A stretch of 64,000 nt of DNA from Hyaloraphidium curvatum SAG 235-1 (taxonomy: Eukaryota > Fungi > Monoblepharomycota), in NCBI GenBank assembly GCA_025558095.1, contig JAIVFI010000019.1, positions 558,001 through 622,000 of the forward strand. The letters are read 5' to 3'. Positions 5,639 through 47,635 of this stretch are shown here, one piece after another. The first letter of the stretch is position 1; each line of letters begins with the position of its first letter. Made by a program: the position numbers and the translations under genes. Under the pieces are notes generated by a model. That model was given only the letters and a program-made list of their open reading frames with translations. It had not been told where the DNA came from and ran no database searches.

Positions 5639-8600
5639 ATGGCGGACAACAACCTGCTGGCGAGCATGTCGCTGGCGCAGCAGCAGGCGCGCATGGCGCA
5701 GCGCGGCGGCCAGCCCGGCCAGATGCTGGCCTCGCCGGCCCAGCAGCTGCTGCAGATCATCGCGCAGCAGCGCCCGGAGATCCTGCCGCAGATGCAGGCG
5801 CAGCTGGTCAACATGACTGAGGAGCAGCGCGAGGGCCTCCTGGCTCAGGTGCTGCAGGGCCGCCGCGCGCAGCAGCAGCAGCAGCAACAACAACAACAGG
5901 GCAGGCAGCAGCAGCAGGGCATGTCGGCCGCCGCGCTGGCTGTCGCCCAGACACAGGCCGCGCTCGCCCAGCGGCCGGCACAGGGCGGGGCGCAGCTCGC
6001 CCAGGGCCAGCAGGCCGCGATGCCGCAGTACATGCTCGGACCCAACGGTCACCTGCTGCCCGTGACGGCAGGCAACCTCGTGGCGCTGCAGGGCGGGCAG
6101 GCGACGCTGCTGGGCAACGCCGCGGCGGCCGGGAAGCCGAACATGCAGGCCTCGCTGCAGCAGCACCAGCTCGCGCTGGCCGCCATAAAGCAGCAGGCAC
6201 AACAGCAGCAGCAGCAGGCCGCCCAGCAGGCCGCCGCGCAGCAGGCCGCGCAGCAGCTCCAACAGCAGCAGCAGCACCAACAGCAGCAGCAGGCGGCCGC
6301 GCAGGCCAAGCAGGAGGCCATGAGCCGGCAGCACCAGCAGAGCAACCTGTTCATCGCCCAGAGCCGGCAGATGCAGCAGAACCAGCTGCAGGCCGCCCGC
6401 ATGGGCGGCGGCACCGCCCCCGCGACCCCCCCGACGCAGTCCGCCGAGATCCCCACCGACCTGCGCATGCTCATGAACCTGACCCAGAGCCTCCAGAACA
6501 AGATCTCCACTGGCAACTTCGGCCCGGGCGAAACCGCCGCCACCGTGACCCAGCAGCTCAACGCCGCGCGCAACCGCATCATGGGCGTCATGAACCAGGC
6601 TGGCATGCTCACGCAGGCCCCGCAGCAGGCCGCGCAGGCGCAGGCGCAGCAGGCCGCCCTGCCCGGCTCGCCTGTCCCGGCCAACTGGGTGCAGCAGCAG
6701 CAGCCGTCGATGCTCCAGGCCGCGGGGCTGCAGACGGCGCTGCAGCAGGCCCAGGCAAAGGGGCCGCCGAGGGGGGCGCAGGGGATCCAGCAGGCGTTTG
6801 CGCAGATGGCGCGGCACCAGCAGCAGCAGGGGGAGGGCTCGCCCCCCGCGGCGCAGCAGGAGGAGGCGGCGCATTCGCCGCCCGCGAAACCGGAGACGAG
6901 GACGAGCGGGAGGAGGAGGAGGGGGAAGGAGGAGGCGCAGCAGCAGGCCGCCCCGCAGCCGCAGCCCGCGCCGGCGCCGGCGCCGCCCGCGCAGACCCCG
7001 ATGCAGCAGGGCTACCCGTCGCCGTCGGCGTCGGTCGACCTGCTGAGCCCGGGGACGCCCGCGATCCGCAGCATGGCGGTGCAGGAGCCCGTGCCGCCGG
7101 CCGAGAGCAAGAGCAAGGTGCAGATGGTGGGTTCCGCATCCTTTCTTTTGCGATCTGTGCTCATGCGCGTGGCCGCAGGTGCTCGAGATCAACGCGCAGC
7201 TGATCCGGGAGATGAACGAGTACCAGCTCCGGGGATGGCCGGAGGACGAGACGTTCAGACGATACCGGGACCGGCTGACGGAGAACATGACGTACCTGAC
7301 GAGGACGGCGGACTACCAAGTCAAGCCGGATCCGGTGCGTTCGATCGCGGAGCGTATGCGTAGCTTTTCGCTGACGCCGTCCATCGTGCGACGCACAGAA
7401 CTACGAGTACCCCACGCCCCCTCCGACGCCGGACCTGAGCCCCGTCAAACCGGCCCGGGATCCCAACGGCGGCGAGCCCGAGCCGCGGCCGGCCGAGCAG
7501 GAGGAGGTCCGGATCAAGCAGGAGCCCGGCACCGCCAACCCGCTCAAGCGGCCGCACGCGGCGATGGAGGAGCAGCCCCGCGAGACGCCCGAGGCCGAGG
7601 CCCTGCGGAGGTCCATGTCGCTCACCCCGCACGCGGCTGCGGCGGCGGCCGCGGCGGTGGCTGCTGCTGCGGCGCGCGCGGAGCAGGCCCAGCAGCAGCT
7701 CGTCGCTCAGCACCAGCTCGCCGCGCAGCAGCAGCAGGCCGCGCAGGCGGACGCCGAGCCGGCGCCGCTCGCCATGGACTTTGCCCGCCCTCCCCCGCGC
7801 GCGCCGCCAGAGGGATCCAACACCCCCGGCGGGCGCAGCGCGCAGTCGTACCACGCCGCCGACTCGCCGACCTCGAGCTACTCCATCACTTCCCCCTCTG
7901 CGTCGGCGTTTGGCGACGTCGCGCGGCCGAGCCCGCTGGCAGGCGCGTCGCCCAACATGAACAACCCGCTGCCCAGGCCGAGGCAGACGGCCGCGGCGAT
8001 CGCGCTCGCGCTGCAGGCCGCGACGTCCAAGGCGCCCCCGCAGCAGCAGCAGCAACCCCAGCAGCAGCAACAACAAGCACAGCAGGCCCAGCAGGCCCAA
8101 CAAGCCCAGCACGCCCAGCAGCAGCCCAAACCGCCGCCCGTCCAGACGGCATCGGGCATGCTCGCGGCCCTGAGCGCCGCGCAGCAGGGCAGCCCCAACG
8201 TCGGCGCGGCCTCTGCGCTCAGCCAGGTCCTCGCCGCGCGCCTGCCGCAGGCGTCGCAGGCCCAGCTCGCCATGCAGGGCAACGGCAGCCCGCTGACGGC
8301 CGGCAGCCCCGCCAACGTGGCACAGCAGATGCTCTTTGGTTTCGGGGCGGGGCAGGCGCCGCAGCCCACCGCGGCGGCCGTCGAGCGGCAGCAGTCTTTG
8401 GGGCAGATGTTTGCGCAGCAGCAGGAGGGGCTCGCGGCGCTCACCGGCTCGGGGCTGGCGGGCGTGCAGTTCCAGATGGAGCAGCGCCTCATGGACCAGC
8501 AGCAGGCGGCGCAGAACCAGCAGCGCGCCCTCCAGCTCCAGATGCTCCAGCAGCAACAGCAGCAACAACAACAGCAGCAGCAGGCCCACGCTGCCCAGCA

Positions 8601-37772: not shown

Positions 37773-38822
37773 TCACGATCCCGCCAACCGCTCCTTGACG
37801 GCCGCCACGAGCGGGTCGATCGCTGAGGGCGGGAACGGCGAGATGCTGCTGACGTTGATCTCGCACACCACGTACCGCTGGGGCTCGCCGGGTGCCGACT
37901 CGCCAAACATGAAGTCGGCGTCCCACAGGAGGGGTAGTTTATCTTGGGCGAGGCCGACTCGCTCACGGAGCTGCGCGACCCAGCCGCCCTCCCCCTCCAG
38001 ATGGGCCTTGAGTTCCTGCCCCTCGGGCCAGTCCGGTCCGTAGTAAACCCGCTGCCCCGGCTGTGGCACGTCCGGGTGCAGCGCGTTGACCGCCTGGTGC
38101 CCGAACCCCGCGACCGTGTCGCCGACCATGTATGCCCGGATCATGCCGTCCCGCAGGCGCGGCTGCCACGCCTGGTCGATCATGTGGCCCCCCGCGGCGG
38201 CGTCGAAGTAGGGCGCGAGGGTGTCGAAAATGCCGGGGAGGTCCGTGGTGAAGGGCTCGCTCCCGCGCTGGGCATGGCGGACGTGGAAGGAGCCGTCGGC
38301 GGAAAGCTCGACGCGGTACACTCCGATACCGCTGTGGCCGCGGTGCTGCTTGAGCACGCGGGGTCCTTTTGCCAGCCTATCGGGCAGCTCCTTCTCCAGC
38401 TGCTGCAGGCTGTCGACCCGGTGCACGTCGCTGCCGAACGGCAGCTGCCGCGTGTCCAACAGCACGTCCTTGGTCCCCAGCCGCCGCACCGCCTCGGGAT
38501 GCGCGCTGACGAGCACGCCGGCTGCCGCAGCATCGGCGAGCACGGCGTCCAGCACGTCCCGGCGCCGCCCGCCTTCGATCGGATTGCACCAGCAGAGCAC
38601 CGCGCGGACGTCCCGCAGCTGCGCCGCCACTTCGCCGGCAAAGTCGTCGTTCCACACCGCGGGCTCGGCATCGACCCCCGAGCGGGCGAACGCGTCGAAC
38701 AGAGCTGCGAAGCGGCTGGCGGAGGGGTCCGAGATGTCTCGCGTTTCACAGTCTCCTGGGTACAGCAGCGCGATCCGCTGGCGGGAAGCAGGCCCGGGCG
38801 ACGCGTTCTGGCCAATAGACAT
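37773..38822 (-). CDS. Cj0069-family ATP-grasp protein, intronless, bacterial type
   Basis: VLCWCNP, VSAHPEAVRRLGTKDVL, RVLKQHRGHSGIGV, DGMIRAY, LPLLWDADF, YVVCEINVSS. Confidence 0.8.
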   Translation of the reverse strand: MSIGQNASPGPASRQRIALLYPGDCETRDISDPSASRFAALFDAFARSGVDAEPAVWNDDFAGEVAAQLRDVRAVLCWCNPIEGGRRRDVLDAVLADAAAAGVLVSAHPEAVRRLGTKDVLLDTRQLPFGSDVHRVDSLQQLEKELPDRLAKGPRVLKQHRGHSGIGVYRVELSADGSFHVRHAQRGSEPFTTDLPGIFDTLAPYFDAAAGGHMIDQAWQPRLRDGMIRAYMVGDTVAGFGHQAVNALHPDVPQPGQRVYYGPDWPEGQELKAHLEGEGGWVAQLRERVGLAQDKLPLLWDADFMFGESAPGEPQRYVVCEINVSSISPFPPSAIDPLVAAVKERLAGS

Positions 38823-39563
38823 GCTGGCTCGCTTCGGCCGGCTACGAGAGCCACGATCCGGCGGCAATCGAGGTGCGGAGGTGGGAGATGAAGTGATCTC
38901 TCCAGCGGTTTAGCCGCCGCTCCTGTATTTCGATGAACGTCTGCCCCAAATCGCGATACGCTCAATTGAAGCATTTGCCAACGGAGTCCGCACGTGTCGG
39001 CAAGCTCGATTCGTTCCCGTATCTGGCGATGCAGTGCTTTCGGCATCTTCGTCCTCGGGAAGTTCACATGTTTGCCCGACTGTTTGTCCCGGGAAGGTGG
39101 AGTCGAAGAAGGCCGTCTTTGGAGGAGCAGATTAGCTGATAAAACGTGTCTGATTCCGGGCGAATCGACCGCCGGTGCCGCATCTTCCCGACCACGTCGA
39201 TTGCCCGGGTGATCGGTGTGCACAGCCCAGCGGTCGGGTCCCGCCGGCCGGCGCGAGCCGGGGCCGATAGCGGCGCCAAGCTGCGTCGGGTGTCCGAGAA
39301 CGCCAATCAGACAAAGCTGGTGGGCCTATTTCAGGTGCTGATGCAAACCAGAAGGGTGTGTGGGCTGTTGTCTGTGGAGTTTTTGAGTTGCTTTATGCGA
39401 GTGGCGCTCTCGAACGGCGGTCCACGCCCCAGATCAGGCGACGACCGCGGCGGCTCAGATAACGCGCCCACCAAAGTTCCTCCGCGGCCCTCCCCCCCGC
39501 CAGCGCCGCCGCCCTCCGCCGCGCCCGCCGCCCCGCCGCCCGCACCGCTGACCCGCGCTCGCC

Positions 39564-41763
39564 ATGGCCGACAACGCGCCCGCCGCCGCACACGCGGTCA
39601 CCGCCGCAGACGCGGTCACCGCCGCCGCGAAGCCGATGACCGAGGACGAACTGAAGCTGGTGCGCGCGCTGCCGCAGCCGGCCCGCACCGCCGCTAACCC
39701 CCGCGGCGCAGGCGAAGCTCGGCTACCGCCAGGAGCTCGACCGGTGCGGTGCCTGAACGGGTCCACTGCGGCACCCACCCACTGACCCCGCCCGCCGCCC
39801 GCAGCTCGCTCCACTGGTTCCACAACTTCGGTGGGTGCGCTCCCCGCGCCGGAAAATGGCTGCGCTGACCGCCCGCCGCGCAGGCATCTCGTTCACCATC
39901 ATCTCCGTGCCCACCGGCATCTGCCCGCTGATCGGCTACTCCCTCGGGGTGGGTGGCGCCACCGTGCAAAATGGCTGCAAAAGCTGACGCCTCGTGCTCC
40001 TGCCGCGCACCGCAGACCGGTGGCCCGGCTGTCATGGTCTGGGGGTGGGTTGCGCGCCGGCCCCACGCCCCTACCGCGCTGATCACTGTGCCTGCAGATG
40101 GTGGATCGTTTTCGCCTTCGTCTTGACCGTGGCGGCATCCATGTCCGAGATTGTCAGTGCGTTCCCGACCTCGGGCGCGCTCTACTGGTGGGCCGCCAAG
40201 CTGGGCGGCGAGAAGTACGGTGGGCATCGCTGTGATCTCCGCGGCCAAAGGGACCGGGCTGATGGCTTTCCGCAGGACCTCTGGCTTCGTGGATCACGGG
40301 CTGGTTCAACCTTTTCGGCGAGGGTATGTAGTTCGTGCAGGCCTGGAACCCGGACGGGCGCTCACTCCCTCCCCACCAAAGTTGGCCTGATCGCCGGTGT
40401 CGGCTACACCTTCGCGACGGCGCTCGCCGCCACCGTGACCCTTGCCAACCCCGACATCACCTTCTCCCTGCCCGCGCTGTACGGCTTGTACGCCGGCGTG
40501 CTGATCGTCTGCGGCATCATCAACTCGGTCGGCGAGAAGATCCTGGCGCACACCACGACCGTCTCGGGTGAGCTTGGGCATTATCTTGCCCGATGGTATG
40601 CGCTGATCCCGGATCCGCAGTCATCTTCCACCTCGTCTTCATCTTCCTCACCGTGATCTGGCTCCTTGTGGCCGCGGGCAGCAACAAGCAGCCGGCCAGC
40701 TGGGTCTTCCAGGGTTTCAACAACATCACGGGCTTCGGCGACGTCTACGCCGCCCTCCTCGGCCTGCTCATCTCGCAGTGGACCTTCTCGGGCTACGACG
40801 CCTCGGCCCACCTGTCGGAGGAGACCAAGTCCTCCGACTCGGGCGCCGCCAAGGGCATCATGAACGCCGTCTCGGTCTCCTTCGTGGCCGGCTGGTTCCT
40901 CATGGTCGGCATCCTCTTCGCCATCCCCAACGTCGAGGATGCGCTCGTCGGCGGCTTCTACGGAATCCTCTTCGAGGTCCTCGGCCAGAGCGGCGCCGTA
41001 GCCATGTCGGCGCTCTTCTGCTGCATCGTCTTCCTGTGCACCCTGGGCTGCATCACCAGCAACTCGCGCATGATCTACGCCTTTTCGAGGGACGGCGCGC
41101 TCCCCGGCAGCAAATGGTGGACACCCATCTGCGAGGCTCGCCTTGGACCTATCCTGATTCGTCGCCCCCATCCAGGGTCCGCCACATCGACCCCCGCACC
41201 CGCACCCCCGTCCGCGCCGTCATCGTGTCCACCTGCCTCGCGCTGCTTCTGGCCCTGCCTTCCATCGGCTCGAGCGTCGCGCTGACCGCGCTGATCTCGA
41301 TCGGCACCGTCGGGCAGTACCTCTCCTACGGTGGGCCGCACCGTGCTGCCCGCCGGCGCCCGCAGCTGACCTCCGGCAACAGCTTCCCCCATTTTCCTCC
41401 GCATCACCATCGGCAACGAAACCTTCAAGCAGGGCCCCTTCAACATGGGCAAGTACTCGATCATCGTCGGCTGGATCGCTGTGATCTGGGTCGCATTCAT
41501 CACCGTCGTGTCGGTACATCCCCTCGCCCTCCATCGGTTCCGAAAGCTGACCCCGCCTCCCGCGCAGCTTCTGCCTTCCCAGCGCGTACCCCGTCACGGC
41601 GACCAACTTCAACTACGCGCCCGTGCTCGTGGCCGCCGTCATCATGTACGCCGGGATCTACTGGCTCGTTTCGGCGCGCAAGTGGTACAAGGGGCCCATC
41701 ACGCAGATCTCGGAGGAGGAGCTGGCGGAGATGGAGGCCAAGGTCGAGGGGGAGAAGGCATGA
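39564..41763 (+). CDS. APC-superfamily amino acid permease (GABA/choline Uga4/Hnm1/BAT1-like)
   Basis: Spliced LGYRQELDR, FGISFTIIS, GGPAVMVWGW, SMSEIVSAFPTSGALYWW, GYDASAHLSEET, SRMIYAFSRDGALP, NFNYA; ~11 introns. Confidence 0.92.
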
Positions 41764-42006
41764 GCGGGGCGTGTGCAGAGTTGGGGCTGGCTTGGGAGGG
41801 CGCGTTCAGCGAGACTTGGTGATCTTGGCCTTCAGTCGTCATGTAAGAGGAGATAGAGTTAAAGCTTACTTCACATACCGCGTCTGCATCGCCGACTCGT
41901 GGTTTGGCGTGATTCCGTGCTTCGGTGGGTGGGCGCCTCGCCACGCTGTCTGCTGTCTCCCCTGTCTCAAAGCATCTCCCGGTCGGAAGTGTGCATGCGG
42001 AGCGCG

Positions 42007-43003
42007 ATGGCTGCGGAACGGACGGTCAAGGCCAACGGCATCGACATCGTCTATGAGGAGCACGGGCCCGGCGACGGTCCGCCGGTGCTGCTGATCATGG
42101 GCTTCACGGCGCAGATGCTCCTGTGGCCCGACTCCCTCTTGCACGCGCTGGCGGTCGCCGGCTTCCGTGTCGTCCGCTTCGACAACCGCGACGCGGGCAG
42201 GTCGACGAAGCTTGCCTCGGCGGGCCCGGGCGACGTCGCGGGCGTCATGGCCGCGCGCGCCAAGGGCGACAAGTTCTCGGGGGCAGCCTACACCCTCGAC
42301 GACATGGCCAAGGACGCTGCGGAGCTGCTGGCCGCCCTGAACATCGACAAGGCGCACATTGTTGGCGCCTCGATGGGTGCGTGGTTTCTTTGCCTTCCGC
42401 GGCCAAGTCCATCCCTGACCTCGCTGCGTTGCAGGCGGGATGATCGCGCAGACCTTCGCCCTGAACCATCCGGAAAGGGCCAAATCGCTCGTTTCCATCA
42501 TGTCCAACACGGGCAAACCCGGCCTGAGCCAGGCCAAGCCCGAGGCCATGGCCATGCTCATGACGCCCATCAAAGCCGACACCGAAGCTGAGCGCATCGA
42601 GGCGTTCAAGCGTGCACAGCGGATCGTCGGCTCGCCCGCGTACCCGGCATCGGACGCCGAACTGGAGTCGCTCGCGCTGAGGATGGCACGCCGCGCGCCG
42701 GTGGACCTCGCGGCGAACAGCAGGCAGATGGTGGCGATCATGGCGTCGGAGCCGCGGCACGAGAGGCTCCGAACGGGTGTCAGGTGCCCGGCTCTGGTGA
42801 TCCACGGAAGCGCGGACCCGCTGGTGCCCCTGGACCACGGGGAGGACACGCACAAGTCGATCCCGGGGTCTGAATTGTTGGTCCTCGAGGGAGTTGGCCA
42901 CGACATATCGGATGCCAACGTGAAGCTGTACCTGGATGCGCTGCTGCCTTTTTTGACAAAGGCGGAGGGGAGAAACGTTGGCTCAGGCGGGACCAGGCTC
43001 TGA
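42007..43003 (+). CDS. Alpha/beta-hydrolase (Abhydrolase_1), bacterial type
   Basis: LLIMG..AQMLLWP, FDNRDAGRS, YTLDDMAKD, GASMG nucleophile elbow split by intron 42377..42434, HGSADPLVP, GVGHD. Confidence 0.9.
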
Positions 43004-43217
43004 TTCGGACGTTGATTTCGATGATAGATGTTTGCCGGACCGCCCTTCCTCCCTCTCCCTCCTTCTCTTCCCCCTTTTTTTCTTTCTTCTCAACTTTCAG
43101 ACCTGATCTTCTAAGAGGACACATGATGATCAACGATGTATTTACATTCAACCAATGAGGCACAAAAGACGTGCAAATGAGGTTCCCGATTCGACCCAAT
43201 CTCACAACGGCCACTTT

Positions 43218-44360
43218 TCAGGCAGCGGTGCCGGCATTCTTCATGGCCCACGCGAACACCTTGCCCTGCTCCTCGAGTTCATTCTCGGCCGGGGTCATGG
43301 TGTTGATTCTCGTGATCTTGCCCTGCGCATCCACGGTCGCGCCCATGGCGCCCTTGAGCGCTGCGCATCCGGCAATAGTTCAAGATCGTTCTCCATGAGC
43401 ATTACTCCCGACGGCGGCTCACTTTTGACGGGGAACCCGGAAGGGGCATGGCCGAACGAGTACTCGACGAGGACACCGGCACGGTGGTGCGGGAGGTGGA
43501 CGAAGTCGCCCAACGGCTTGCCGCCGTCGATCCCAAAGGCGAGCCACATTTCGATGCCCTTGCCAATCTCCTCTGAGGGGTCGGAGGAGAGCATCAGACA
43601 CTACCACACCGCAAAATGCAGGCATGCCGGACCAACCTTTGCCCCGGAAGATGCCGGTGGGCGCGAGCCACACCGCGTCGTCCGCCATGGTCTCAAGGTA
43701 CTTGCCAGCCTCGCGGTGGGCCATGTTCTCGAGGATCTTCCTGACCGCTGCTTCGGCCTCCTTGCCCCCCTGGATGGGGCCCATGGCCTTTTCGGCGGCC
43801 TGCCAGTAGGCTTGCTGGATGGGCCGGTCGAACTGTGCGTGAACCCGGGTGAGCTTGCCGGCGTCGTCAAGGTACAGGCGCACGGTGCCCGTGATCGCTG
43901 ATGGGGGGCGGAGCAAGGCTTCAGTGGAGGCCCAAGCCATAGAAGATGCAGAGCGGAGTACACTTGGGAGCGCCAGGGAGGAGTTCGGCCCCGTACTCCC
44001 CCTTCCACGGGCCCTGGATGATGTGCACGCCGGGGGCAAAGTTCATCCTAGCCTTGACCTGCGCAGGGACTTCACTCTTGAGGCCGACGGTGGCGACTTG
44101 TGCGACGGCCTCCTCGGTCTGGGCTTTGCCGACGGTGGTGCTGCCGGGACGATGGGAAGGCGGATCAGCTCGAGAGCGACGCGAGACCGTGTTCGAAAGT
44201 CCCACCCGAGCGCGTGGATGTAAACGAACGTGTCGGGGTCGGTGCACCACTTCCACGCCCAGGAGAAATCGTTCATCTTGCCGGGCTTGGCGAAGTGGGT
44301 GTTGCAGTCCTCGACCCAGCGCTTGTAGACGGAAACGGCTTCCTGCTCGGTGAGCGGCAT
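43218..44360 (-). CDS. Protein with probable tandem SnoaL/NTF2-like domains, multi-exon
   Basis: Exons give ..LYLDDAGKLTRV.. and YLETMADDAVWLAPTGIFRGK-EEI..DAQGKITRI, two NTF2-like units; ~4 introns. Confidence 0.55.
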
Positions 44361-44903
44361 TGTTGGCGCAATTGGGCCTGGGCGGTGTAGTCGCGAGTGG
44401 TGTGGGTCGGTGCGAATGCGTAGATTCGGAGCGAAGGTCTGGGGCAGAAGTTGAGGAGAATGCACGGATTCTTTTATGTGGCCCCTGCGGGAGACGGTCC
44501 AAAGAAGATTCGACTTCGTTCGGCCGTTCCACGCGAAGGTGTCGTCACGCGCCCTTTTGTCTCCCGCACCTTCGACACTGTTTGATGCATGAACGGGTCT
44601 TTGTGCCACCGAAGGGGTTCTGGGGCACTTTGAGGAATGTGTTCCAGGCTTTGCAGGTAATGGCTGCTAGTATTGGATGGGGTTCCGTGCGCTGCCTGGG
44701 CTTGCGGGCGGCATCGGCGGAACGATCGAACGTTCGATGCTTCCACTTTCGATCAACCCCACGTGCGCCAAACATGTGCTGCGCTCGAGCCCATGCACTA
44801 CGTAGCTTTCCTAGAAGGCGAATGTAAAGCCTCTATTGCAAATGGATGTCGATCTTCCAATTCGGCTGAAGGCAAGATCCAAGCCAAGCGTGAACCCCCG
44901 AGC

Positions 44904-47204
44904 TTAGAGCCTGCTCCTCTTCGGCATCGGCGGCCTCGGGCCCTCCGGGAACGCGAACGGCTCCGGATCCGCAAACCTCCGCAGCACGTTCCTTGTGATC
45001 CTCGCTACCTCATTGTCGTACCCCCGGTAGTCCAGCGCCCCAGCCCACGCAATAGAACCCGTCGAAAACACCGCGCCGCCGCCCGGCGTCTCGAAAAACA
45101 CCATGTCGGCGCGGACGTCGGGGTCCCGCTCGCTGTGCGGGCGCGAGGCGAGGAACTCCTCCTTGACGCGGAGCATGGCCGGGCCGTGGTTTTCGGATGA
45201 GGCGAGGACGAGGGCGTGCGCGGGGGAGCCGAGGTACCTGTCGAAGCTGCGCACAATGTAAGGAGAGATCGTGCGTCGAAGAGCGAGCGGGACCCACCGG
45301 TCGATCTCTTCGCCCGCGGCGCCGCCGCCGATCCGCCCAAAGTCGCCGATGATTTCCTCCTTCACCCCCTGCATCGCAAACGCCGCCCTAGGATCGTCCG
45401 CCCCGGGCATGCGCCTATAGTAGCTCGACTTGTCGAACCCCTGCGCCGCGAACCCGATCCCGCAAAGCCGGTTGGGCGGCCGTCCGTTGCGCCGCCACAG
45501 CCCGCCCAGCCTGCCGTCGCTCTCGTGGAAGTACTCCCCCGGCTCCTCGGGCCACGCCCGGGTGCCGTCTTCTGCGCGGCGGAGCTCCACCGCCGCGGGC
45601 CAGGAGGGTGAATAGCCGGTGCGCCAGTAGAACCCGTTGCCGCCCATGTACATAAGCCGGCCACCCCCCGCCAGGAAGCCCTCGAGGGCGTCCAGCATCT
45701 CGTCCGAGTAGTACTCGGGGTGCGTGCCCGTGACCACCACCCTGGCCCCCGCGAGCGCCGCGGCCCCGCGCAGGTGCAGCGCGTGATCGGTCAGCAGGTC
45801 GTGCCCCGGCGCCTCGCGGGCGAGCCACCGCAGGATGGCTACGTCCGAGGGGAAGGCCCAGTTGCGGGAGTCGGGGGAGATGTTGGCCACGGGGCGGAGC
45901 CACGAGCTGTGCCGGGTGCCGGTACCGTCCGCGTGGAACTCGTACAGGGAGCGGCCCCAGGCACGGTTGTCGTAGAGCTTCTGGACCACGGGGCTGGGCG
46001 GGCCGCCCTTGTTGAGCAGGGTCTTGTCCAGGCCGACGTGGACGGTCTCGTTCGCGTAGGCGAGGTACGTGAATGTCGGGGCGAGGAAAACGACGGGCGT
46101 GCAGGGGCGGTCGGCGGGCTCGACCAGCACGACCGCGTAGGCGGTCTGCCCGCCGCGGGAAAAGGTCGCCGCGTAGGCGCCCGAAGGCAGGTCGGCCGGG
46201 ACGGTCCACTCGGCCGCGGGCGCCCATTCCATGTCGTACTGATCGTCCGACGAGAACTGCGCCGCGGCGTACAGCTCCGGCTTGTCCGACCAGCGCTGCG
46301 TCGAAGAGTCGTAGTGGATCCCCTTGACGGCGCGCGCGGGCCAGTTGAAGAACTCCCCATCCCACGCGTGCGGGCCGAGGTCCTTGAAAGCACGAGTGCC
46401 GATGCCGACGGAAAAGTCCCACCAACCAGCGCCTCCGGCGTCCGCGGGGGGCTGCGGCTGCAGGACGGCCTGCACCACGTTCTCGCATGTCACGGCGCCG
46501 GGAAACAGCCGCGGGGCCTCGATCTTGCCGTCAAAGTGGTTTGAGAAGGTGGGGGAGGGACCAAAGGTCCTCGAGCGCGCGGCGATGGCCAGCCTGTCGG
46601 CGGCGAGCGGGGCGAGCCTGACGGAGGCGGTCGCCCGGTCCTCGACCTCCTTCTCTGCGGGCCCCTCCGCGCCGTGGATGGCCAGCAGATGGAGTGTGCC
46701 CGACGACGCGTCGTAGGTGGCAGCCAGCAGCGTCCACCGCAGCTCGGGCAGCGGGCGCCTCAGCGCGAGGAGGGCCTTGCCGGAGCCGTCGACGACGCAC
46801 GGCCCGCCCTCGTCGTCCAGCTCGATGTAAAGCCCGGCGCCCGTGCGGCTGTCTGCCACGCCCAGCACGGTCTGAGCCCGCCGCGGCCGCGTGGGAAACA
46901 CGGCGCAGCCGAGTGCCCGCGAGTCGAGGGGGAACGGGAGCGCGAGCCGGGCGACGCCGTAGTTCCCAATGTGCTGGGGCTGCGCCGCCACGCTGATCGT
47001 GCCCGCGAACGGCGCATCGATCGGCAACGCATCGATCGCGTCGGTGATGCCGCCGACGGGCGCGCCACGGCCGGTGCCTATGCGGACCAGGCCCGCGTCG
47101 ACGGGGCCGGACGGCGCGGCGTGCACATGGAACGTGACGCGGTCGCCGGGTCTGGCGAAAAGGTGGCTCGGGTACGCCGCAATGGCGGGCTTCGTGGCGG
47201 ACAT
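44904..47204 (-). CDS. N,N-dimethylformamidase large (beta) subunit-family protein with LamG-like insert and C-terminal PTS1
   Basis: FDGKIEAP, WWDFS, TFTYLAYANE, SLYEFHADG, GTHPEYYS, YMGGNGFYW, GGLWRRNGRPP, GFAAQGF, AGEEIDR, VRADMVFFETPGGGAVFSTGSIAW. In-frame intron 45247..45297; ends KRSRL. Confidence 0.9.
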   Translation of the reverse strand: MSATKPAIAAYPSHLFARPGDRVTFHVHAAPSGPVDAGLVRIGTGRGAPVGGITDAIDALPIDAPFAGTISVAAQPQHIGNYGVARLALPFPLDSRALGCAVFPTRPRRAQTVLGVADSRTGAGLYIELDDEGGPCVVDGSGKALLALRRPLPELRWTLLAATYDASSGTLHLLAIHGAEGPAEKEVEDRATASVRLAPLAADRLAIAARSRTFGPSPTFSNHFDGKIEAPRLFPGAVTCENVVQAVLQPQPPADAGGAGWWDFSVGIGTRAFKDLGPHAWDGEFFNWPARAVKGIHYDSSTQRWSDKPELYAAAQFSSDDQYDMEWAPAAEWTVPADLPSGAYAATFSRGGQTAYAVVLVEPADRPCTPVVFLAPTFTYLAYANETVHVGLDKTLLNKGGPPSPVVQKLYDNRAWGRSLYEFHADGTGTRHSSWLRPVANISPDSRNWAFPSDVAILRWLAREAPGHDLLTDHALHLRGAAALAGARVVVTGTHPEYYSDEMLDALEGFLAGGGRLMYMGGNGFYWRTGYSPSWPAAVELRRAEDGTRAWPEEPGEYFHESDGRLGGLWRRNGRPPNRLCGIGFAAQGFDKSSYYRRMPGADDPRAAFAMQGVKEEIIGDFGRIGGGAAGEEIDRWVPLALRRTISPYIVRSFDRYLGSPAHALVLASSENHGPAMLRVKEEFLASRPHSERDPDVRADMVFFETPGGGAVFSTGSIAWAGALDYRGYDNEVARITRNVLRRFADPEPFAFPEGPRPPMPKRSRL

Positions 47205-47635
47205 CGCGGATGGGATGAGGTGAGCGCGTGTGAGGTCTGTCTCCCGCTCCGGCCGCGGGAACCGTTCCGTTCCGTGTAGACCAGGACCAGGTTGCCCTGC
47301 TAAACTCCTGAGCCCCACATTGCGTTGCCAGGGTGAAGTAGAGTCATGGAGCCAAATAGCATCAGATACGGCCATATCTACCAGAAAGCACCAGTTCTCG
47401 TCAGACCACTGAAGTTAAGCTGGTATGAGCCACGTCAGTACTGTGGTGGGAGACCACACGGGAATACGTGGTGCTGTATCTTTTCTCTTTTTCGCGGACG
47501 GATCTTCCACGAGGCGCTGGAAAGGATTGTTTTTGATCATTGCTGGCCCCGATGTGCTCACCGGCGCCATCGGGGTGAGGTGGAAGAGCTCGAAGCATTG
47601 CACGACACGCCGCAGAGAAAACGATCTTCCGTGGT

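Follow-up and report, generated by a model that had tools for sequence, protein, structure and literature searches.

A spliced fungal gene of the N,N-dimethylformamidase large-subunit family with a probable alphaproteobacterial origin and a predicted peroxisomal targeting signal

The pond fungus Hyaloraphidium curvatum possesses an expressed and spliced gene encoding a member of the N,N-dimethylformamidase (DMFase) large-subunit family, located in an analyzed window of 64,000 nucleotides (contig C19, positions 558001-622000 of the assembly, the contig thus being at least 622 kb long). We consider it probable that this gene was borrowed from alphaproteobacteria as a mononuclear-Fe amidohydrolase, and that the tail of its product was remodelled into a type 1 peroxisomal targeting signal (PTS1) by which the enzyme is imported into peroxisomes. 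The observations in a preliminary description of this DNA are confirmed in the main, and its interpretation is supported.

The structure of the gene was established from one transcript contig of 2383 nt, assembled from run X1, which is presumed to be RNA. The contig carries an Illumina adapter at one end and maps to 44830-45246 and 45298-47239, where it is otherwise identical to the genome. It joins position 45246 to 45298, and the skipped 51 nt read CT..AC on the forward strand and GT..AG on the gene strand. With its span of 44830-47239, from which exactly 45247-45297 is left out, the contig shows that the gene is both expressed and spliced, that it starts at 47204 and that it ends in -SRL; the transcript evidence for splicing is this one assembled contig. 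Although the long ORF reaches 47375 on the minus strand, the start is placed at 47204, since the transcript begins near 47239 and an upstream ATG is absent. The intron is in frame without a stop codon, so that the ORF continues across it, with 17 additional residues. The read-through translation of 44907-47204 (minus strand) has 766 residues, and the public protein P0001 has 749, which is 17 fewer. A gap of exactly 17 residues appears at the intron site in the alignments to both 8HUY and 6LVB, and the stretch encoded by the intron is missing from the orthologues P0002 and P0003. The 51-bp GT-AG intron of the preliminary description is thus borne out by the transcript and by the gap against the solved relatives. 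Exon 1 encodes the LamG-like domains at the N-terminus and the greater part of the DMFA2_C catalytic domain. The comparisons were made with the read-through reference, the exons taken singly and the public protein P0001, and in the tree each exon of the paralogues formed a row of its own.

Table 1. Features of the H. curvatum gene. Positions refer to the window; residues are numbered as in the 749-residue public protein.
Feature	Position	Strand	Evidence or remark
Transcribed span (mRNA)	44830..47239	-	5' UTR of ~35 nt without upstream ATG, CDS, 3' UTR of ~74 nt
Exon 1 CDS	45298..47204	-	Codons 1-635 plus 2 nt; ORF list, Pfam, 8HUY and 6LVB alignments, match to P0001
Spliceosomal intron	45247..45297	-	51 nt, GT..AG, phase 2; transcript contig, 8HUY and 6LVB alignments, P0002 and P0003
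Exon 2 CDS	44904..45246	-	Stop codon included, at 44904-44906
C-terminal Ser-Arg-Leu codons (PTS1-type peroxisomal signal), after Pro-Lys-Arg	44907..44915	-	Direct reading
Six active-site codons, whole span	45306..46058	-	Residue alignment to 6LVB; column check in multiple alignment
Y383 (TYLAY, second Tyr) = 6LVB Y399	46056-46058	-	Alignment to 6LVB
Y421 (SLY) = 6LVB Y440	45942-45944	-	Alignment to 6LVB
H495 (HPEY) = 6LVB H519	45720-45722	-	Alignment to 6LVB
E497 (HPEY) = 6LVB E521	45714-45716	-	Alignment to 6LVB
N523 (GGNGFYW) = 6LVB N547	45636-45638	-	Alignment to 6LVB
E633 (GEEID) = 6LVB E657	45306-45308	-	Alignment to 6LVB

By profile and alignment, the protein belongs to the DMFase large-subunit family and has intact active-site residues. 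The DMFA2_C domain (Pfam PF20254) is matched with an E-value of 3.9e-82 and a score of 277 bits (cut-off 27) over profile positions 2-373 of 374. The best match among solved structures is 8HUY, an N-acetyl-(R)-beta-phenylalanine acylase, aligned over residues 8-745 (4e-97), and the large subunit of the Paracoccus DMFase, 6LVB, is aligned over residues 8-750 (3e-90). In both cases a single alignment spans the N-terminal LamG-like and the catalytic domains, which denotes the full three-domain architecture and agrees with the earlier reading of a full-length large-subunit-like protein; the nearest Atlas clusters carry DMFA2_C together with Laminin_G_3. In the Paracoccus enzyme Y399, Y440, E521, H519, N547 and E657 are required for iron binding or catalysis (PMC7686228). 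The predicted 2-Tyr-1-carboxylate iron ligands are present in the fungal protein, as are the catalytic His, Asn and Glu (Table 1). The TYLAY, SLY, HPEY and GEEID motifs that had been picked out earlier each align to a functional 6LVB residue, and the loss of iron ligands on alignment, which would have spoken against the proposal, was not seen.

The phylogeny nests the gene within alphaproteobacteria, in agreement with the earlier claim of horizontal acquisition. The H. curvatum protein, P0002 and P0003 form a clade with full support (100/100, UFBoot/SH-aLRT), which is nested at 100/99 with proteins of the Sphingobium, Novosphingobium and Bradyrhizobium type, and the wider alphaproteobacterial clade around it is supported at 99/91. 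A FastTree phylogeny of 343 rows agrees with this nesting. Identity to an uncharacterised clade is about 50%. P0002 belongs to a fungus that shares synteny with H. curvatum: the contig of P0002 is collinear with contig C44 of H. curvatum, and the two have PNPOx, a chromate transporter and MPC (82% identity) in common. In the locus of P0003 (L002) the flanking ORFs lack Pfam matches and give only one weak H. curvatum match, and the LmbE-like gene next to P0003 shows the same degree of similarity to bacteria as to H. curvatum.

An old fungal or eukaryotic gene, inherited vertically and lost nearly everywhere without any bacterial transfer, would account for its presence in at least one related fungus. 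In some Atlas clusters of this family the bacterial share is only 83-88%, and fungal relatives could hide among the unnamed proteins, which make up the majority of the database. Such descent is nevertheless very unlikely, as the eukaryotic clade lies several nodes deep in the alphaproteobacteria with the supports given above, the best-scoring named members of this family of about 3950 clusters (at 50% identity) are bacterial, and the three other H. curvatum copies join different bacterial clades. Broad vertical distribution in fungi was not seen either: H. curvatum is the only named eukaryote among the best 120 and the best 150 relatives, in a database where about one quarter of the proteins are named. 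No report of gene transfer into nuclear genes of Hyaloraphidium was found in the searched literature.

The gene is physically part of the fungal genome. It adjoins a eukaryotic 5S rRNA gene on one side and intron-bearing fungal genes on the other. The high GC content (70.8%) and the bacterial type of the protein could point toward bacterial contamination or an assembly artefact. However, a spliceosomal GT..AG intron is spliced out in the transcript, the gene sits inside a large fungal contig between the flanks just described, and its GC3 matches that of its neighbours (0.88-0.91 vs 0.83-0.86), which leaves this explanation a practically negligible probability.

The neighbours of the gene in the window are two ORFs without assigned function and genes for a DUF6815/ATP-grasp-like protein, an amino-acid permease and an alpha/beta hydrolase. 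A co-transferred gene cluster was considered and rejected, as these neighbours have no counterparts beside 80 bacterial homologues, save weak generic hydrolase matches. Conversely, the bacterial partners (aminotransferase, saccharopine-dehydrogenase-like, AAT, SnoaL, MFS and amine oxidases) gave no match in the window. Neither L001 nor L002 shows synteny with the window, the tblastx signal being noise from summed statistics, and an LmbE deacetylase beside the nearest bacterial gene, as in L002, proved to be a coincidental hint.

The last residues of the protein are PKRSRL, and their codons as well as the stop codon lie within the X1 transcript contig. This ending was given in the preliminary description as that of a C-terminal extension. 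The ending stands, and the extension is a modest one, with 13 residues past the conserved FAFP vs 4-15 in the bacterial sisters, so that the tail appears remodelled rather than added. Among 260 full-length family proteins, only the H. curvatum protein and P0002 (-AKL) end in [SAC][KRH][LM], and none of the 257 bacterial relatives does. A distant H. curvatum paralogue on contig C36 ends in -SKL. Within the relatives compared, the predicted PTS1 is here shown to be confined to eukaryotic members, and this comparison supports the earlier reading of a retargeting to peroxisomes. P0003, the remaining member of the clade, has the non-canonical ending -PRM and lends weaker support to conservation of the signal. 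Of the peroxin families, Pex14_N and Pex2_Pex12 (PEX2/10/12-type, RING-peroxin) were searched, and both were found above cut-off in the H. curvatum genome.

The same acquired and active enzyme might instead stay in the cytosol, with -SRL fortuitous or masked and no import taking place. The -PRM ending of P0003 is in line with this, and so is the lack of a PTS1 in two of the four family members of H. curvatum. By our own estimate from residue frequencies, however, a [SAC][KRH][LM] ending arises by chance in ~0.3% of proteins, yet it occurs in this gene, in P0002 and, independently, in the distant paralogue, and in none of the 257 bacterial relatives. The context of the signal, judged by eye, includes basic residues at -4 and -5 as well as a proline-rich linker, both of which favour PEX5 binding. 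We regard a cytosolic enzyme as unlikely, and import into peroxisomes as the better reading.

The small subunit was searched with a home-built profile, A1, anchored on an Aminobacter ORF. As a control, A1 was applied to 80 bacterial genes and recognised a small subunit immediately upstream in 27 of them; it also recognised one in the control loci L094 and L095. The upstream ORF of Paracoccus aminophilus pAMI5, tried as the first small-subunit candidate, gave alone no match to 6lvb_B and was later recognised by A1. No small-subunit homologue was found with A1 (E <= 1) in the window, in L001 or L002, or in the whole H. curvatum genome, which extends the earlier remark that none is visible in the window. 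A1 likewise found none beside the three nearest named bacterial genes, and the 8HUY entry has chains of one sequence only, with no small-subunit chain deposited. Although the Paracoccus DMFase needs its small subunit for activity (PMC7686228), the missing subunit poses no problem here, because those three bacterial loci and the 8HUY entry lack one as well. By analogy with these relatives, the fungal enzyme may be active as a single chain.

A true DMFase acting on DMF or other formamides, with a small subunit that escaped recognition, would explain the name of DMFase large subunit in the public record of P0001, and the iron site and catalytic residues are the same as in DMFase. We hold this to be highly improbable. 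Identity is 32-33% to the plasmid homologues that bear a small subunit (Paracoccus aminophilus and Aminobacter; the solved DMFase was left out of the tree), against about 50% to the uncharacterised clade, and A1, which works on the controls, finds no homologue of the subunit in the genome. The gene has neither an adjacent small-subunit gene nor orthology with DMF-degradation genes. DMF is described as a synthetic solvent in 10.1101/2019.12.17.879908, and AceAB, a member of the same family, does not cleave DMF as reviewed in PMC11573777, so that family membership would be no predictor of DMF activity. On these comparisons DMF is probably not the substrate. Coupled to the nearest bacterial genes is a class-III aminotransferase, genes of the saccharopine-dehydrogenase-like, amine-oxidase and MFS types lie in the vicinity, and an N-acylated amine or a beta- or omega-amino acid is the more likely candidate substrate. 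Release of formate, as proposed earlier, would require the substrate to be a formamide, for which no support was obtained here.

Four DMFase-family members were found in the H. curvatum genome. The three other copies attach to different bacterial clades in the trees, and the four trace back to three or more distinct bacterial sources (AU p = 1.8e-53). The second PTS1-ended copy, the unrelated one on C36, suggests selection for amide chemistry inside peroxisomes. A wider reading, which we put forward tentatively and at somewhat under even chances, is that the Hyaloraphidium lineage captured Fe-tyrosinate amidohydrolases of this family at least three times and tagged two unrelated copies independently (-SRL, and -SKL on C36). 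They would form a peroxisomal module for amide and amine catabolism built from bacterial parts, otherwise unreported in eukaryotes, and would be the first eukaryotic 2-Tyr-1-carboxylate iron enzymes.

The following history and mechanism are proposed. An ancestor common to Hyaloraphidium and one or more related fungi would have acquired the gene from a Sphingomonadales or Bradyrhizobium-like alphaproteobacterium. Later, in the H. curvatum line, a spliceosomal intron would have been gained, the host codon composition adopted and the C-terminal tail remodelled into the -SRL signal. The protein may fold in the cytosol without a small subunit, probably as a dimer, and PEX5 may recognise its tail and bring it into the peroxisome matrix. 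There, Fe(III) on Y383, Y421 and E497, aided by H495, N523 and E633, would hydrolyse an N-acyl or N-formyl amide, and the released amine or amino acid could pass to H2O2-producing peroxisomal oxidases.

Compared with known systems, the fungal protein resembles the acylase of 8HUY, 8I59 and 8I5A in its three-domain length; in the stretches aligned, HPEY, GGNGFYW and the G-x-E-x-D Glu are shared and Tyr stands at both Tyr positions, and these entries consist of single-sequence chains, i.e. without a deposited small subunit. About one third of the residues are identical, and the acylase is bacterial and lacks a PTS1. The DMFase of Paracoccus sp. DMF (6LVB) shares the family and all six functional residues, but is an alpha2beta2 enzyme with a small subunit of 15 kDa (PMC7686228), for which A1 finds no equivalent in the H. 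curvatum genome. The fungal gene differs from it by its intron and PTS1, and does not belong among the orthologues of DMF-degrading genes. The acetamiprid amidase AceAB of Pigmentiphaga sp. D-2 is a bacterial two-subunit enzyme of the same family that acts on a xenobiotic, and it shows that substrate range varies among family members (PMC11573777); here it is compared with the fungal protein by description.

As in PTS1-bearing fungal enzymes of bacterial origin in general, a bacterial-type gene is combined with an intron gained after arrival and a [SAC][KRH][LM] ending missing in bacterial relatives; what differs here is that two unrelated copies of one family are tagged. Enzymes of the DMFase family, which possess an unusual iron centre and cleave highly stable amide bonds, have to our knowledge been known so far only from bacteria. 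No report of the family in fungi, other eukaryotes or peroxisomes was found in the searched literature. An expressed and spliced fungal copy, putatively free of a small subunit and predicted to carry a PTS1, would bring the family into eukaryotes and into an organelle, and a candidate single-chain enzyme may be tractable for biochemistry. The gene also offers a datable example of retargeting, with intron gain, a composition shift and a tail remodelled into a targeting signal. It appears to be a clear, if not revolutionary, case of a bacterial enzyme borrowed and, as predicted, sent to a new compartment, and it may provide a handle on the peroxisome metabolism of early-diverging fungi, a little-explored area.

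Hyaloraphidium curvatum is a zoosporic fungus of the Monoblepharomycota. The gene under study lies in a long minus-strand open reading frame running from position 47375 to 44904 of the window. The 766-residue read-through translation from the ATG at 47204 matched the Pfam domain DMFA2_C at 3.9e-82, and no model was matched in an NCBIfam search of the same translation. The fungal protein aligns end to end with the N-acetyl-(R)-beta-phenylalanine acylase 8HUY (4e-97), its best solved match, and with the large subunit of the Paracoccus N,N-dimethylformamidase (DMFase) 6LVB (3e-90), which bears out the preliminary description of a full-length DMFase large-subunit-like protein. The queries used for searching were the read-through reference, single-exon references or the public 749-residue record P0001, and not a joined spliced sequence. 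P0001, annotated as "large subunit of N,N-dimethylformamidase", equals the read-through frame minus 17 residues, and therefore the gene model is already public. Our literature search found no paper on the origin or targeting of the H. curvatum gene.

After GEEIDR, the alignments to 8HUY and 6LVB both leave exactly 17 residues of the fungal frame unmatched. A single public sequencing run, X1, guessed to be RNA, holds the stretch with 0.85 of the sampled words present. Its 2383-nt contig maps to 44830-45246 and 45298-47239 and is otherwise identical; the skipped 51 nt read CT...AC on the plus strand, that is, GT..AG on the strand of the gene. The 51-bp GT-AG intron proposed earlier is thereby upheld, the evidence of splicing and expression being one assembled contig of X1, not raw reads. 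Because the gene is single-copy in the genome, the joined form represents spliced RNA and not a processed DNA copy. The leader in the contig is 35 nt long and has no ATG ahead of the one at 47204, so the longer frame to 47375 is unused. The stop codon lies within the contig too, and the expressed protein therefore terminates in PKRSRL, as had been read from the genomic sequence. A complete 5S rRNA gene is located 160 bp upstream of the ATG, overlapping the unused part of the long frame. Another X1 contig (932 nt, depth 210) has only its last 39 letters in common with the 5S stretch; further 5S copies in other surroundings are therefore likely.

In the Paracoccus enzyme Fe(III) is bound by Y399, Y440 and E521, and H519, N547 and E657 are likewise required for activity (PMC7686228). 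Alignments of single-exon stretches to 6LVB place Y383, Y421, E497, H495, N523 and E633 of the fungal protein, respectively, at these six positions, within TYLAY, SLY, HPEY, GEEID and GGNGFYW. The same residues are kept in the multiple alignment by the two closest relatives, P0002 and P0003, by the bacterial sisters, and by the three H. curvatum paralogues at each site that their exon pieces span. These comparisons confirm the active-site residues in the first four motifs, which had been reported as retained, and the Fe ligands Y383, Y421 and E497 are conserved.

The DMFase family comprises 3954 clusters at 50% identity, and a relative is encoded in 556 of 600 scanned bacterial-genome stretches. 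P0002 and P0003 are 58-61% identical to the fungal protein, and nothing else exceeds 54%. A FastTree phylogeny of 343 rows and a careful IQ-TREE phylogeny of 56 rows agree in uniting the three proteins in one clade (100/100, UFBoot/SH-aLRT). It is nested (100/99) among proteins that, where named, come from Sphingobium, Novosphingobium and Bradyrhizobium, and at the next level up within a larger alphaproteobacterial clade (99/91 in IQ-TREE). The phylogeny supports the suggestion of horizontal acquisition, with alphaproteobacteria as the donors. Contamination, also considered, is ruled out because the intron is spliced and the flanks are fungal.

The contig of P0002, L001, encodes a mitochondrial pyruvate carrier (MPC) 82% identical to that of H. 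curvatum and a chromate transporter for which H. curvatum is the sole named relative; its PNPOx and chromate-transporter pair is collinear with H. curvatum contig C44. Judged from these genes, the source of P0002 is a relative of H. curvatum. The collinear segments are 1-2800 and 18568-18924 of L001 (a Logan contig, SRR26194948) and 114700-118800 and 146538-146789 of C44 (PNPOx, chromate transporter, MPC). The orthologue lies between these genes on L001 but on contig C19 in H. curvatum, and therefore the gene moved since the lineages split. P0002 and P0003 have no intron at the H. curvatum site. Their genes have GC3 values of 0.64 and 0.59, against 0.88-0.91 in the H. curvatum gene and 0.83-0.86 in its neighbours. 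The absent intron and lower GC3 in the orthologues, and the neighbour-like GC3 in H. curvatum, fit a single transfer into a shared ancestor and a long stay since then.

A total of four DMFA2_C loci were found in the H. curvatum genome. The C38 copy groups with Paracoccaceae and Roseomonas-type proteins. Over its C-terminal half it shares 69% identity with a bacterial protein from a metagenome. These two features suggest that it arrived later and in a separate transfer. The C17 copy groups with Pseudonocardiales (Tamaricihabitans, Amycolatopsis). Forcing all fungal rows together, with paralogues entered as separate exon rows and the constrained group chosen after the tree had been seen, cost 328 log-likelihood units (AU p = 1.8e-53). 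Therefore, the three full-length copies attach to three different bacterial clades. The C36 copy, which is too distant to be placed, is without the LamG-like N-terminal domains and has HDEY in place of HPEY. Based upon these placements, the H. curvatum lineage acquired the family several times independently, and the studied gene represents one such event.

Paralogues of the studied gene in the H. curvatum genome, and features near it in the window
Feature	Location	Strand	Description
C38 paralogue	C38:~6085-8369 (L091:4082-6369)	-	full-length, one intron, ends LEGK
C17 paralogue	C17:~702650-704880 (L092:3650-5885)	+	full-length, long branch, ends GDVM
C36 paralogue	C36:~387860-389604 (L093:3860-5604)	+	short, intron-split, ends GSGSKL
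DUF6815 protein	window 37773-38867	-	
AA_permease_2 gene	window about 39994-41800	+	intron-split
Alpha/beta hydrolase	window 41899-43003	+	over two frames
ORFs	window 43419-44609	-	no Pfam match
5S rRNA gene	window 47364-47482	+	complete, Rfam 107 bits

The solved small subunit 6lvb_B is matched by an ORF that lies upstream of the homologue on an Aminobacter plasmid, and a profile, A1, was built from eight related ORFs. A1 recovered a small-subunit gene in both plasmid controls and, directly upstream of the large-subunit gene, in 27 of 80 bacterial loci. No small subunit was detected with it beside the three nearest named bacterial relatives (L003, L004, L014), on the contigs of P0002 and P0003, in the window, where none had been seen before, or in the whole H. 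curvatum genome. ORF lists for five further sister-protein contigs show no small ORF directly upstream. The branch of the acquired gene seems to work without a partner subunit, as the solved acylase entry suggests. The 27 carrier loci are L028, L033-L035, L045, L046, L050-L052, L056-L060, L062-L064, L070-L072, L074, L075 and L078-L082; their conserved ORF, of about 100 residues, mostly lies immediately before position 8001. In the Atlas a more recent family, PF26354 DMF_alpha, stands for the small subunit and is in some cases fused to the large one.

Of 260 full-length family proteins, just two end in [SAC][KRH][LM], the canonical C-terminal peroxisomal signal (PTS1): that of H. curvatum (-SRL) and P0002 (-AKL). 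None of the 257 bacterial members has this ending, nor does any bacterial locus when translated to its stop codon; P0003 ends in -PRM, which matches only looser PTS1 patterns. Tails diverge immediately after the conserved FAFP motif (12-13 residues in the eukaryotic and 4-15 in the bacterial proteins), and therefore the signal arose by tail remodelling. The fungal protein has no N-terminal extension relative to the bacterial ones. The last ORF of the C36 paralogue aligns to the family C-terminal segment and carries a canonical -SKL eight residues after the last conserved segment; the C38 and C17 copies have no PTS1 ending. Pex14 and RING-peroxin families are encoded in the genome, and we infer from its ending that the studied protein would be imported into peroxisomes.

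DMF is a synthetic solvent (10.1101/2019.12.17.879908), and it is not cleaved by the family member AceAB (PMC11573777). The label DMFase should not be taken as the substrate of the fungal protein, whose closest solved match acts on N-acetyl-beta-amino acids. A class-III aminotransferase gene is coupled to the family gene in the sister bacteria, the stop codon of one frequently overlapping the start codon of the next; in the vicinity are saccharopine-dehydrogenase-like, AAT-family (PF03417), TetR and MFS genes, as well as amine oxidases of the copper or flavin type. Translational coupling to the aminotransferase, with saccharopine-dehydrogenase-like, PF03417, TetR and MFS flanks, was observed at L097, L098, L099, L103 and L004. 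This gene group looks like a conserved, undescribed catabolic cluster, and the context points to an amine or amino acid released from an N-acyl compound. No counterpart of any bacterial partner gene is present in the window, and none of the neighbours at 37773-44609 is linked to the family in bacteria.

The preliminary observation is confirmed and the evidence favours its interpretation: the gene, which is expressed and carries an intron, encodes a member, with a peroxisomal tag, of a bacterial family of iron amidohydrolases, and it came from alphaproteobacteria. Events of this kind are known, and the present case is clean and moderately interesting. Our best guess for its role is a peroxisomal deacylase, which would feed amine oxidases.
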